NCBI GenBank assembly: GCA_002104905.1
Contig: MCFE01000361.1
Location: forward strand, 1 to 64,000
Direction: 5' to 3'
DNA: 64,000 bases
DNA from: Basidiobolus meristosporus CBS 931.73
Taxonomy: Eukaryota > Fungi > Basidiobolomycota
Made by a program: the position numbers and the translations under genes. Every line of letters begins with the position of its first letter. The first letter of the stretch is position 1. Positions 9,975 to 17,274 of this stretch are shown here, piece by piece. The notes under the pieces were generated by a model. That model saw nothing but the letters and a program-made list of their open reading frames with translations, made no database searches and was not told the origin of the DNA.

Positions 9975-11283
9975 ATGATTCAGCTTCTGAACACCCCATC
10001 CCAAGTCGCCAAAATGAAGAAAGAGGCCAGTTACGATCCTTACTTGGCTTCCGCAATGAATGAGCTTCGAGAAATACTGAATGTGGAAATGTATGTTGAT
10101 GTGGACAAGTTGAGACGTGCAGCACGCCACGGTATTCCGTCAGAAATACGAGGGGTCAGTTAGTACACACTGGTCACTAAGCGTACACATTAAATAAGCT
10201 TCATTTTCTCAGGAGGTATGGAAATTTCTGTTAGGTGTTGAACCAGCGGACCGTTGTATGTATAGTACCAGTTGGCGTTCCAAATCCATTTCACTAAAAC
10301 CAGCTTTTTTACAGCCCACGAGCTCTCTAACAGCAAGGCAAAGGCGGACGAATATGCGCAACTTGATAAAGAAAACTCAGAAAGTACAAAAAGAATACGG
10401 GGCGAAGTTACAAGATACTTGAAAAGACTCGGCAACCATGAGGAAACGGCCAGCCAGTTTTCCGTTTTCGAAAATGTGATCGGGGCATACTTGAATGGCA
10501 ACAAGAGTGTTGAATATTCCCCTGTTTTAGTGCACATGTGCGGACCGTTCGTTGAGTGCTTATCAGAGGAATGGGAGATATATTACTGCTTTGAGCAACT
10601 AATGTGCCTTATAAGTAAGTGGTTATCTGCTGGTTGATTTGGAATCCAAAGTTAATGCTAGCGATATCATTGCAGACGAATATTATGAGGAGAATGAAAT
10701 CAACGAGTGTGTCGCCAAATTTATAACATTGTTTCGAACGCTCTTGCCTGACCTGTATCCTTTCCGATTCAGGGACATGTTTGAGATACGCCCATCAAGG
10801 GCACAGCAGCCTTAACCATACTGTAAGATACAATTATTTCCAGGATGAAGAAGTGGATTTCAATGAGTGGGTCGCCTCGTGGAATTTAAATTTACTAGCC
10901 AAGGAGTTGCCGCTGGACTCTCTCTCGCGCCTGTGGGATACGTATTTCTGCGAAGCAAACTTTCTAGAACTGCACGTTTACGTCTGTCTGGGTGAGTCAT
11001 GTTCATGCTCATGTTACCTTCGTCTATGAACTGACACTCCATACGCCAGCTATCTTAACTTATTGCAAAGAGAATCTCGAGGACTTGGAGCAATCCGAGA
11101 TACGCACTATGCTGCTGAGGTTACCCGAGCTAGACATGGATCAGGTAATAATGCCATGCTATAGTTTGAGGTTGCGAGACTGACAACTAATGCATCCAAT
11201 GCTAGATTCTCCAGCAAGGCTTCAATTTGATGCACGAAATACAGGAGCGGGAGATATCCGACGGAGTAAACGGGTCCATGTAG
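9975..11283 (+). CDS. Rab-GAP TBC-domain protein (atypical)
   Basis: LRRAARHGIPSEIRG/EVWKFLLGV, IRGEVTRY, LAKELPLDSLSRLWDTYF, LELHVYVCL. Multi-exon; the start codon is uncertain. Confidence 0.82.
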
Positions 11284-12620: not shown

Positions 12621-13915
12621 CTATTCCTCCTCTTCCTCCTCCTCCTCCTCCTCCGCCTCCTCATCCGAGTTCTCCTCTTCTGCTTCTGAGCCTTCCTCTT
12701 CGTCGTTGCTCTGGTTCAACTCCTCTTTCTTAGAAATAGGCTTGTACTTGTAGCCCAGCACAGCATCAACGCATGTGAGACGCACTTGAGCGTTGTATTC
12801 ACCGATCGAAGAAAATACGTCGATCTTTTCCTGAACTCCCTTCAGTATTTCACTCAAATTCCACACCTTCATCATGCCATCGGAAGAGATGGAAATGATC
12901 AAAGGAATGGAGGCTGCGTCAGATTGCGATTTCAAACTCTCGATGATAGTGAGGTCCTTGATACGGCTGGAATGTCCCTTGAGACTGGCTAGGAGCTCTC
13001 CACTGGAGACTGAGTAAATGCGTATCACTCGATCCTCGCTACCTGCAATGATATAATCTTCTCCAGCATGTTGGTAGTATTTCATGGATGTGAATCGGGA
13101 TCGGTTCTCGAACTTTTGGACTGCTTCGGCATCCGCTGCGTTGTAGACTTCTATTTCCCTAGCATAAAGAATTGCATATTGCTGACCATCCTTGTTCCAT
13201 TCAATAACCTCTCCCTCTACAAAGCAAAGCATCAGTAAATATCTCTTCTCGATAGTAACTCTATATTCCTCAAGTACCTCGGCCAAGTTTTGTAGCTGTG
13301 CCTTTGTGGCCATTGAGAAGATTCCACATTCTCAATGTTCTGTCGTTTGAAACAGAGAGGGCCAGTTTACCGGAAGGATGGACTGAGATACTGTTCACGC
13401 GGCCTCTGTAGCAGAATTAGCTATTAGTATTCAGGTTCTCCAAAATAACAATATGCTTGACAACTAACTTGTGTCCCTTCATGGTCTTCAGGCATTCCCA
13501 GTCTTTTGTTCTCCAGATACACACAGTACCGTCTTCACTGCCACTAAGCATGTGTGATTTTCCATAAAATCTAAGGGAAGTAATGGTGCCTTGTTGTTGA
13601 TTCAAGTGACCTAGCTCTTTTCTTCTTTTTAAATCGTACAATCTATTGGTGAGCGTGGTAAGCTTGTGTTAGAAGCAATGGTCAGGGTTCCCAATGAACA
13701 AAGAATAAGGTTTACTTGATAAATTCGTCAGTACTTCCAGAGGCCAAAAATTGGCCGCCAACCCCGACACATTTGATGCAACCAATGTGAGCAGGGAATA
13801 TAAATACAGGTTGCAAGGTGATCGAATCTCCGGACCAGTAACCATCGATGCCGTAAAGAATACGTTCGTATGAACCGGCCACTATACGAAAATCTTCGGT
13901 GGTCTTTTGAGCCAT
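12621..13915 (-). CDS. MAK11: WD40 60S ribosome biogenesis factor Mak11/PAK1IP1
   Basis: FRIVAGSYERILYG, PVFIFPAHIGCIK..GGQFLASGSTDEFIK, YDLKRRKELGHL, SGSEDGTVCIWRTKDWECLKTMKGH, and an acidic C-terminal tail. Confidence 0.92.
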
Positions 13916-14185
13916 TTCTATTAGGTAATAACGGGATATAGAGAGAAACACGTCTTTCCGCTGCCCAAGTAATCTTTTGGTAAACCTTTTTTTTCTTTTT
14001 TTCTTATGGAGTAATTTAGTCATGTTGCTTAAATTTAACCCGTTGTTGTGCTGGTCAAAATCTCAAGATTTTCTGGTGGGAGACTGATTTAGAGTTGAGT
14101 TGATGGTTGTTTAATGGTTGTTCTGTTGTAACCATCCCTCCAGGACTGTGCTTGTATTTTTAAGATAGAGTGGTTTATATAAACC

Positions 14186-16136
14186 ATGGATGACAAAAAT
14201 CCGTCTTTCAACTATCTGAAAGACTTTCAGGTACAAGGCCTCCGGCTTGATTGTCTCCGCATAACTATTAAATTTGCTTCTCCATTTGTTGAAACGTGCT
14301 TATCTCTAGAGTGCGACAAACACTGATACGAGTGGACAGATTCCAAGTGCTATAGCGCAATTACTGTCGATACCACTCAGCACAACGCCATCAGTATGTG
14401 CTTGTAGAACCATGATTTTTCCTCCTCTCTCTATAGCTTAATTCTTTTCTAGACCTCGCAAGCAGCTTCTTCTAATCCTAACCTGAATGTGTCGGCATTT
14501 GCGAGTCTCGATTTGACGACAATATCACCTGATCTTATTCAGCAAGTGCGAAGTGATTATCAACGGCAGGCAGGTGCTACCAACGAAAATGGCGGAGCTA
14601 AAGAAGTGACGACCACCCAGTTACCTAAGCCCGTGCACTCGGGATTCATAGATACGTCTGACCCGACACCCACACCATCAACTTCGCAGATCCCCGATGG
14701 CCTTGCCAACCTACCCAACGATTACGAAGGGATTCTAGCTGCGCTGAAAAGATTTCAAAACCCACCACAAGATCCCAGAATCAGACAGGCTCCTGGTGCG
14801 TCGCCGACAAACGATCCTCGACCTCAGGGGGTGTCGGGTATTACACCAGGACTCCAAGACCCACGAATTAGATCAACAGGCGGCTTACAACCAGTGCCAT
14901 CAAATGATTCCTTGGAGAAACTCAAGAGTGCCACCTCACATTCACACACCCTTCAAGATCCAAGGATCAGACCAAAGTCTAGCATCTATCAACCACAAGC
15001 TTCTCGGGCCCAGAGAAACCCAAGGCCACCGCCGGATCCGCGTACAAAGCCCAATATTTTTCGACAGCGTAAAGCTAGAGAAGATGCTCATAAATACCCC
15101 GATTCGCGAGGAAAGGGCTATGTCGACCGCGATGCGGTGAGCACTAACGAGATAGCACTGGATCCCCGTAGTGTTATCCAGTATGATGATTATCTAGAGG
15201 ACAGCACAAAGATAATTGGGGATGGCTCTGTACAGAATAGCAACGGGAGACGTAGAAAAGCAAACCCGCCCACAGAAATGACCTATCCTCATAAGATGCC
15301 GCGCACGAATGAGCGTAAGGATAGCCATGCTGGTGGTGCGAAAGCGCGCAACTTGCTTCCCGTGTTTGAATTCTCCGATCCGAGTAACGATCCTTCCATA
15401 CCGAAAGGCCCCCGAGCGGACTACATTTCTGCAGAAAAGCCATACCCGATAGACAAGTACAAGTGGAACAGCCAAAACGATGTTTCCGACCAGATCGAGC
15501 CAACCAAATCGGCCCCTGCACCTCCAATCCCCCAGAAAACCACCGCCATATCTCCAGCCGTTTTGATCGAGTTGAGTAAGATCGCCGAAGATGGCACTAT
15601 ATTCACGATACTAGAGCAAATTCGCAGGATGCAGGTACATTTCCTTTACTGGTTCTCTGCAAGTTCCACGCTGTTGTATAACAACAAACTCTAAGGTCGA
15701 CCGTGAGGAGGAGCTATTTGACCAGCGAAAAAAGCTACTAGAAGAGCATGATAAGGAAAGAAACAAGCTGCATGCCAAAGAGATCCTAGGCGCATTAGAC
15801 CCACGAGAAGTTGAGGTGGAGACGTACATGAAAATGTATTCGTGAGTCGAGACTAATGCTCCTTAATTCATCCGCCAGGCGTTAGAGCGAAAGCTATTTA
15901 CCGAACTTCGAACCTTGGACAAAAGTATCGTCGCTGAGATGGACAAGATTGTTCAGAAGCAACAGCAAGCGCTGCAAGATGTAACCTCTCCCCAATGCAT
16001 GTGATTTCGCCACACTTGAACCCACTAACGCTCGGCATTCTAGGCCAACGTTCCACTCTTTTTCACGACCACAGACAAAGACGCCATTGCCAAGCAACAC
16101 AAAATCCTGGGGCTGCTATCCGAAATGGCCCCATGA
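14186..16136 (+). CDS. DGCR6/gonadal-domain protein with a long DPR-repeat disordered N-terminus
   Basis: The spliced C-terminus ISPAVLIELSKIAEDGTIFTILEQIRRMQVDREEELFDQRKKLLEEH...[51 protein letters not shown] aligns by eye with recalled human DGCR6 ([47 protein letters not shown]...[34 protein letters not shown]). There are six DPR motifs upstream. Confidence 0.78.
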
Positions 16137-16790
16137 TACGAATCTTTACCCATCAAATGTAATATTTCCAAGTCATCAGTTTTCCAGGATAATAAACGCT
16201 AGATTCAACTGGTTCCAAAGAGGTACAAGGTTACCACCATCCCCACTCACGAGATTTGTGGGTTGGGCGCAATGAGATCTCTAGACAAGCCAGCTTTCGG
16301 CTTTGTAACCAACGCAACCCAAATATATATATACATATATGGGTATAGCTCCGAAGTTGAAGCAAGTACGAAGTGAGTTACTCATTTTTCGCATTGGTTC
16401 TTTGGAACGAAATCGGGACATCTTCTCATGTACAATGTATAGCAAATCTCGGTAGTTTACTGCAAATGAGGCATGTCTCCTTTTGAATTAATTAAAATTC
16501 AGGAGCCTGTTTCTTTCTTGTCCAAGTCTATCTCAAATCCGAGTAGATCCTTGGACAATCAGGATACAACAAACCAACCCAACCCAATCCAATCCCTCAT
16601 CATCCTCTCTGGTGGCACGGCCGAATGTTTCGGCTCCTCCGCGAGTGATCACCACCCTCGCGAATGCAGGCAATGCTTTTTAATACAGAAATACAGCAAC
16701 AGTCACCGTGGAAGCTGAAACACCGTACAACTTAATATTCCTAATCTCGTCGGGAGGGAAGCCTTGTTGAAAGGGGAAAGACTTTGCGGA

Positions 16791-16880
16791 GGCAGGCCAA
16801 TCCGTAAAACACAGGCCGTCACACACCCGCCACCAGGCAGGCCAATCCGTAAAACACAGCCCGTTACACACCCGCCACCA
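16791..16880. repeat. 45-bp tandem dimer, each unit containing CCAAT
   Basis: ggcaggccaatccgtaaaacacaggccgtcacacacccgccacca occurs twice (16791-16835, 16836-16880) with 2 mismatches. Confidence 0.85.
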
Positions 16881-17274
16881 GATAAGTACTGATGAAACAA
16901 AGGTGACAGAAATCACAAGTCATATTTGTACGGACGAGATGACAAAATATATTGGTGGCACCACATACCAGCTCTGCAAACCCTATAGATCAGCCTGCCT
17001 GCATTGGCGAAATTCCATTCCCAACTGGTGACAAATTGGACGCACCTTCATTCCGCACCGCTGAAACCACTACTGCTCCAAAACATGCCTGATCTGGGGG
17101 GATTACCCGTTATGGAGAAAAAGGGCGTGAAGGTGGAGTTTCTATTTTCGACTGCACCTACTCTCACTCCTCGGTCCAATCAATCCATCAATCCATTTGG
17201 GTGCTCGCGAGGTGAAAAACTGGTGGAGATAAATATGGCCAAGGGTCCGATTTTCTTGTGCGTAGTATGGTCTA

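Follow-up and report, generated by a model that had tools for sequence, protein, structure and literature searches.

A DGCR6-family protein of Basidiobolus with a DPR-rich disordered linker: candidate docking sites for WDR82/Swd2

Does a fungal protein of the DGCR6/gonadal family carry docking sites for the WD40-repeat protein WDR82/Swd2, and would such sites say anything about the family as a whole? The question is raised by a gene at positions 14186-16136 (plus strand) of the window analyzed here, the 64,000-nucleotide (nt) stretch from 1 to 64,000 of contig MCFE01000361.1 of Basidiobolus meristosporus CBS 931.73 (assembly GCA_002104905.1); as read from the sequence, it has six exons and encodes a protein of about 541 amino acids (aa). 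DGCR6, a gene of the 22q11.2 deletion interval, is still without an accepted molecular function. An earlier reading of the DNA letters and their open reading frames (the sequence-only reading) had proposed that a long disordered region with six Asp-Pro-Arg (DPR) motifs was fused to a DGCR6 domain, and that this fusion linked the family to WDR82-dependent transcription termination. The anatomy can be stated with near certainty: a DGCR6-family protein with an N-terminal helix, a linker of about 325 residues holding six (Q)DPR motifs, and a C-terminal helical-hairpin domain. Within the fungal DGCR6/gonadal family, the gene is the orthologue from Basidiobolus. For the best explanation taken as a whole, including a docking step on WDR82/Swd2, our estimate is a probability of about one in three.

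The DGCR6 domain and the DPR motifs

We derived the gene model from the sequence and from comparison with the orthologue, and used single exons or two deposited proteins for searches and folds, namely K493DRAFT_356427 from B. meristosporus (391 aa; P0002), which matches part of 14186-16136 at 100% identity, and the independently annotated K7432_003777 from Basidiobolus ranarum (548 aa; P0001). P0001 agrees with exon 2, with its junction to exon 3, and with the exon 3 frame throughout (59-61% identity across 394 aa). Between the two species, synonymous sites of exon 3 are saturated (proportion of synonymous differences, pS, 0.74, versus a nonsynonymous proportion, pN, of 0.23), and the ratio of nonsynonymous to synonymous substitution rates (dN/dS) is 0.06-0.22 where computable. 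Because of the full-length match to P0001 and a pN far below pS, we read the exon 3 frame, which carries the six motifs and is open for 401 codons, as coding and constrained.

The C-terminal domain was assigned to DGCR6 by the sequence-only reading, and profile, pairwise, and structural comparisons all bear this out. Against the Pfam profile PF07324 (cut-off 29.6 bits), P0002 scored 56.3 bits (profile positions 41-182 of 194) and P0001 52.3 bits; these above-threshold scores come from the two deposited proteins, and the sole match in an exon-by-exon Pfam scan was a weak DGCR6 match in exon 5. BLASTP against P0069, a protein carrying vertebrate DGCR6 strings (e.g., DGTVFEIV), gave 31% identity over 129 aa (E = 2e-16), and phmmer with P0001 recovered proteins bearing such strings at E = 1e-7 to 1e-4. 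The C-terminal ~145 aa share with vertebrate DGCR6/DGCR6L and Drosophila gonadal (PF07324) the signatures DGT[IV]F and QQxxLxxxGVPxF..TT as well as the helical-hairpin fold, and the Basidiobolus gene is a genuine member of the DGCR6/gonadal family. A comparison with the fungal family DUF2458 (PF10454), which had also been suggested, identified that family as related, with the Basidiobolus proteins scoring 26.9 and 23.9 bits, below its cut-off of 33.1, and not filed there. We found no paper mentioning DUF2458 in the full-text literature.

An AlphaFold2 model of P0002 residues 245-391 had a predicted local distance difference test score (pLDDT) of 93.3 and a predicted template modeling score (pTM) of 0.76, with helices at model residues 17-29, 31-73 (43 residues), 79-117 (39 residues), and 129-145, and its superposition with the ESM Atlas cluster of chordate DGCR6 gave template modeling (TM) scores of 0.65/0.66. 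Solved structures gave no sequence match, Foldseek against the PDB returned nothing at E <= 0.001, and the best Z in a wide VIA-align comparison was 8.9, for generic helical hairpins and bundles, which is below the meaningful level for helical folds. As only generic helical hairpins were found among solved structures, the fold gives no function, and PF07324 membership gives no mechanism because the molecular function of DGCR6 is unsettled (PMC6554986). When the domain (P0002 residues 250-391) was modeled as a homodimer, the score was 0.16 where 0.32 is the mark, and it speaks neither for nor against dimerization. The domain model also superposed on an ESM Atlas cluster labeled "C12orf4 homolog" (PF10154 Fy-3; TM 0.69 by query, 129 residues) and matched a Basidiomycota cluster at TM 0.71; judged from models, a distant structural kinship between DGCR6 and C12orf4 is possible.

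Six DPR motifs were identified in exon 3, at residues 107, 121, 136, 169, 195, and 237, with exactly the contexts listed earlier (QDPRIR three times, NDPRPQ, PDPRTK, and LDPRSV). By composition 0.27 would be expected, and none of 200,000 composition-preserving shuffles of exon 3 reached six; the rest of the window's open stretches held 3 DPR in ~12,100 aa, so that the motifs are in ~58-fold excess over them. No tandem DNA repeat underlies the motifs, with only a 19-nt stretch coding for QDPRIR recurring at 74-89% identity and with synonymous differences; it is therefore as peptide that the repetition is maintained. The B. ranarum orthologue retains five of the six motifs despite the saturation of synonymous sites, and they are conserved above the background of the linker (P = 0.013 for the whole linker and P = 0.007 for the variable cluster), which is itself 57% identical between the two species, with 31% of all tripeptide windows fully conserved. 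A specific reader is suggested by the context that they share, Q-D-P-R-[IVT]. We accordingly interpret the six (Q)DPR motifs as short linear motifs under purifying selection.

In the AlphaFold2 model of P0001, residues 94-410 are unstructured (pLDDT ~50 or lower), a stretch that spans all linker motifs, disorder being the usual setting of short linear motifs. The disordered region had been put at ~400 aa, a length that fits the whole pre-domain part (~408 aa, from exons 1-2 and exon 3 residues 1-365); this part, however, includes the conserved N-terminal helix and motif, and the unstructured stretch proper is ~320 aa. The linker contains further conserved blocks (PVFEFSDPSNDPxIPKGPRADYISA and DSRGKGYVDRDAVST), and its sole Trp is not conserved.

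Family comparison and the origin of the linker

We ran an exhaustive phmmer search over 1.84 billion protein representatives, which yielded 92 matches at E <= 0.001, all covering P0001 residues ~400-548, with a second weak match at P0001 residues ~43-108 in many fungal relatives. The DPR region had no homologue outside Basidiobolus in this search, word-based searches with exon 3 and with the P0001 domain region recovered only the two Basidiobolus proteins, and an ESM Atlas feature search with the linker gave no usable match. The closest relatives were uncharacterized proteins of Mucoromycota (Jimgerdemannia, Calcarisporiella, Podila, Umbelopsis, Syncephalastrum, and others) and of Chytridiomycota. 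Fungal DGCR6-domain proteins such as those of Jimgerdemannia (RUS23789.1), Syncephalastrum (ORY91980.1), and Quaeritorhiza (KAJ3087335.1), at E = 1e-20 to 1e-13, share the three-part plan of N-terminal motif, variable linker, and DGCR6 domain. They differ from the Basidiobolus protein in their short pre-domain part (median across the family, 78 aa) and in having no DPR array, with one or two DPR present only in Powellomyces and two Phlyctochytrium species. PF10454 was matched at E <= 0.001 by 65 of 89 relatives, and most members match both PF07324 and PF10454.

The N-termini of the aligned Mucoromycota and chytrid relatives carry the motif LDLSxIxPxVIxQVRxEY, in which I, V, and R are invariant, and which was modeled in P0001 as a helix at residues 71-93 (pLDDT ~75). 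Within exon 3 of B. meristosporus, TISPDLIQQV in this N-terminal stretch (14519-14548) resembles AISPAVLIEL of the first DGCR6-domain helix (15548-15577), a likeness suggesting that an ISPxxLI helix may be repeated within the protein.

These comparisons bear directly on the proposed fusion. The sequence-only reading had taken the union of linker and domain as a Rosetta-stone clue, a logic that needs two modules existing separately elsewhere; it is inapplicable here because the DPR region has no homologue outside the genus, and the early-diverging fungal relatives share the plan of N-terminal motif, linker, and DGCR6 domain. The gene is therefore no such fusion, and its DPR region arose by expansion of the family's own linker rather than by the joining of two independent modules. 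Further, the DPR motifs are not a family feature. Their expected conservation in orthologues stood in B. ranarum, as described above, and failed among the more distant relatives, of which 86 of 89 have no linker DPR. The other three are the chytrids Powellomyces hirtus, Phlyctochytrium arcticum, and P. planicorne, with 4 linker DPR together versus 1.0 expected (P = 0.018), which we regard as a faint echo and not as decisive.

Exon 4 of the Basidiobolus gene adds a seventh DPR (ALDPREVE), at the tip of the helical hairpin. It recalls the loop-tip DPR of Symplekin, and we considered it as a possible family feature, a suggestion rejected on finding it in 3 of 65 aligned members. The P. planicorne protein (KAJ3101212.1, 689 aa; P0041) has a single KRPDPRLKP in its linker and extends ~200 residues beyond the DGCR6 domain, perhaps because two neighboring genes were annotated as one.

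Candidate readers of the DPR motifs

That DPR is a docking motif for WDR82, as the sequence-only reading had stated, is well founded in experiments on SET1A/B, ZC3H4, and Schizosaccharomyces pombe Symplekin (PMC9911701, PMC13710762). Replacement of DPR by AAA abolishes WDR82 binding of SET1A (PMC9911701), of SET1B (bioRxiv 10.1101/2025.05.13.653699), and of S. pombe Symplekin, for which a crystal structure places D and R in stacking contact with two Phe of a conserved pocket (PMC13710762). The same study attributes DPR also to ZC3H4, describes the WDR82 pocket as highly conserved across eukaryotes, and allows that other WD40 proteins may use DPR-like motifs (PMC13710762). The Basidiobolus protein resembles these WDR82/Swd2 partners (SET1A/SET1B, ZC3H4, and S. 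pombe Symplekin/Pta1) in presenting Asp-Pro-Arg in a loop or disordered segment, six of its motifs lying at pLDDT ~50 or lower and one more at the hairpin tip. The presumed SET1A/B context, [QE]-D-P-R-[CV], resembles the Q-D-P-R-[IV] of Basidiobolus. In contrast, there is no homology to these partners, the Basidiobolus protein having no SET, RRM, CCCH, or HEAT domain, and it carries six or seven DPR where the studies cited describe one per partner.

In the explanation that we prefer, the protein would act as a nuclear adaptor. Its helical DGCR6 domain would engage a partner of the family, and the exposed DPR motifs would offer repeated docking sites for a WD40 propeller. The best candidate is WDR82/Swd2 with its conserved DPR pocket, since no other reader of DPR is established by experiment. 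Docking would connect the DGCR6 module with either Set1/COMPASS or the PP1-PNUTS/cleavage-polyadenylation machinery on RNA polymerase II (Pol II). A basic patch in the linker, RRRK, is a possible nuclear localization signal. The docking step on its own is plausible and lineage-restricted, and we hold it tentatively. A selected array of the only known WDR82-docking motif makes a cheap, concrete, and testable hypothesis, and any conserved partner of DGCR6 would be valuable; the present value of the locus is that of a lead and a corrected gene model, not of a mechanism.

Several observations weigh against WDR82/Swd2 docking. The linker DPR is absent from the 86 relatives mentioned above, and the matches bearing vertebrate DGCR6 strings are ~145-250 aa long, with no long disordered region and no DPR anywhere; given these relatives, no connection is left between the DGCR6 domain itself and WDR82. 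The clue is confined to one fungal genus and does not transfer to the DGCR6 family by conservation, and only two species, both of that genus, document conservation of the array. In the studies cited above, each known WDR82 partner is reported to have one DPR, often near WPL/I or LI-like motifs, and these companions, which are present in PNUTS and ZC3H4 but are not required in Symplekin, are absent here, with no WP[LI] in exon 3 or in P0001. The tripeptide is a weak predictor of binding. In the full-text literature we found no evidence linking DGCR6 to WDR82, PNUTS, ZC3H4, SET1/SETD1A, or CXXC1; DGCR6 was named beside any of these in only four papers, three with WDR82 and one with SETD1A/CXXC1, all of them incidental as judged by title and counts and none in a title or abstract. 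Another reader, or no specific role at all, is nearly as likely as WDR82/Swd2. The further suggestion of a Restrictor-like module does not survive, as the Pfam scan gave only DGCR6 and DUF2458 and no CCCH finger, and no ZC3H4-like match was recovered by exhaustive phmmer.

The strongest competitor accepts the (Q)DPR[IV] motifs as functional short linear motifs and assigns them to a partner other than WDR82, such as another WD40 propeller (CstF-50 reads DPK in CstF77), an importin, or a different peptide-binding domain, so that the adaptor would serve a pathway unrelated to Pol II termination. The conserved unit is longer than DPR, including the preceding Q and the following I/V/T, and the array is multivalent, unlike the described WDR82 partners; the missing companion motif, the latitude for other WD40 proteins already cited, and the several other conserved linker blocks fit this proposal as well. 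Still, no reader of DPR besides WDR82 has been shown experimentally, and the WDR82 pocket is described as highly conserved across eukaryotes. We consider a different partner possible and regard it with doubt.

Slightly more doubtful is the alternative that the DPR have no specific binding role and are by-products of a lineage-specific expansion of disordered sequence rich in P, R, D, and Q, through an old internal duplication of a short unit, with their seeming conservation due to species relatedness and moderate constraint on the linker. Such an origin would suit an array found in one genus only, the loss already of one of the six motifs in B. ranarum, the conservation of nearly a third of linker tripeptides in any case, and a family in which almost all representatives work without such motifs. 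It fits less well with the persistence of the motifs, with synonymous codon differences, despite saturated synonymous sites, with their conservation above the linker background (P = 0.007-0.013), with the lack of any remaining DNA repeat, and with a count beyond all of the shuffles.

The proposed docking on WDR82/Swd2 by the Basidiobolus protein does not extend readily to its relatives. That DGCR6/gonadal proteins in general are accessory factors of the WDR82/Swd2 Pol II machinery (COMPASS, PP1-PNUTS, cleavage-polyadenylation) is improbable, as such a general partnership is not supported where the DPR motifs are not conserved across the family. Were it true, the docking motif would be written into the protein in Basidiobolus and, faintly, in the three chytrids, other lineages including humans would reach the DGCR6-WDR82 partnership through a separate bridging subunit, and DGCR6 would gain its first molecular pathway as a gene of 22q11.2.

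Gene model, feature coordinates, and neighboring genes

The five introns of the DGCR6-family gene are each GT...AG and 59-79 nt long, and the last three splice junctions are those of deposited P0002 (Table 1). After exon 1, K493DRAFT_356427 reads an open reading frame (ORF) in another frame at 14796-15140 (IPESDRLLVRRRQ...) and rejoins our model at GYVDRD, so that exon 2, the family motif at the N-terminus, and all but one of the six DPR motifs are missing from it. Because the B. ranarum model and a pN far below pS back the exon 3 frame, we regard the deposited model as mis-framed in its middle. It is very improbable that this public annotation is the real product and that the DPR frame goes untranslated, given that the latter is open over its full length, finds a match along that whole length in the separately annotated B. 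ranarum protein, has a pN well below its pS, and restores a family-wide N-terminal motif that the deposited model is missing.

Table 1. Features of the DGCR6-family gene, in window coordinates
Feature	Position	Strand	Remarks
Exon 1	14186..14230	+	15 aa; start codon; GTACAA donor; P0002 uses the same first exon
Exon 2	14310..14393	+	28 aa; IPSAIAQLLSIPLSTTPS matches LPSAIAQLLAIPLSSIPS of B. ranarum P0001; skipped in the deposited B. meristosporus model
Exon 3	14453..15634	+	394 aa; holds the family motif, the six-DPR disordered linker, and the beginning of the DGCR6 domain
N-terminal family motif	14507..14572	+	LDLTTISPDLIQQVRSDYQRQA; predicted helix; second phmmer stretch common to many fungal relatives
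Disordered linker	14573..15547	+	~325 aa; lineage-specific
DPR motif 1	14771..14779	+	PPQDPRIRQ; kept in B. ranarum as PPQDPRINP
DPR motif 2	14813..14821	+	PTNDPRPQG; kept in B. ranarum as PSQDPRVPP, D and P codons changed synonymously
DPR motif 3	14858..14866	+	GLQDPRIRS; kept in B. ranarum as RLQDPRIKP
DPR motif 4	14957..14965	+	TLQDPRIRP; kept in B. ranarum as PPQDPRTRP
DPR motif 5	15035..15043	+	PPPDPRTKP; not conserved, B. ranarum SEQRTKP (GAT/GAA, CCG/CAG)
DPR motif 6	15161..15169	+	IALDPRSVI; B. ranarum MPSDPRSVI, within the longer conserved block DPRSVIxYDDYL
Basic patch RRRK	15248..15259	+	Putative nuclear localization signal; B. ranarum RRKR at the aligned place
DGCR6/gonadal domain	15548..16133	+	Interrupted by introns 3-5; a helix, then a long helical hairpin and a terminal helix
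Exon 4	15696..15815	+	40 aa; holds the in-domain DPR at 15798-15806 (hairpin tip); junctions as in P0002
Exon 5	15879..15980	+	34 aa; alone matches PF07324 profile positions 124-156, E = 0.0012
Exon 6	16044..16136	+	30 aa and stop; family signature, GVPxFxxT consensus seen in family alignments

The order of a RabGAP-TBC gene, a small gene, a WD40 gene, and the DGCR6-family gene is conserved in B. ranarum. Split ORFs on the plus strand at ~10270-11180 represent the apparent RabGAP-TBC gene, as judged from its conserved B. ranarum neighbor (L001 1227-2637). The WD40-repeat gene (~12621-13917, minus strand) is divergently transcribed from ~270 bp upstream of the DGCR6-family gene and encodes an acidic C-terminal tail, with a 356-aa WD40 gene at the equivalent place in B. 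ranarum (L001 4571-5849); it would seem to be MAK11/PAK1IP1-like rather than WDR82. We considered it as a reader of the DPR motifs and set it aside, since it gave generic WD40 matches only and adjacency alone is no evidence. Downstream, at ~16680-16920, minus-strand ORFs contain the directly repeated peptide WWRVC[ND]GLCFTDWPA, present twice, a sign, in the sequence, that a short intergenic stretch of DNA was duplicated in tandem.

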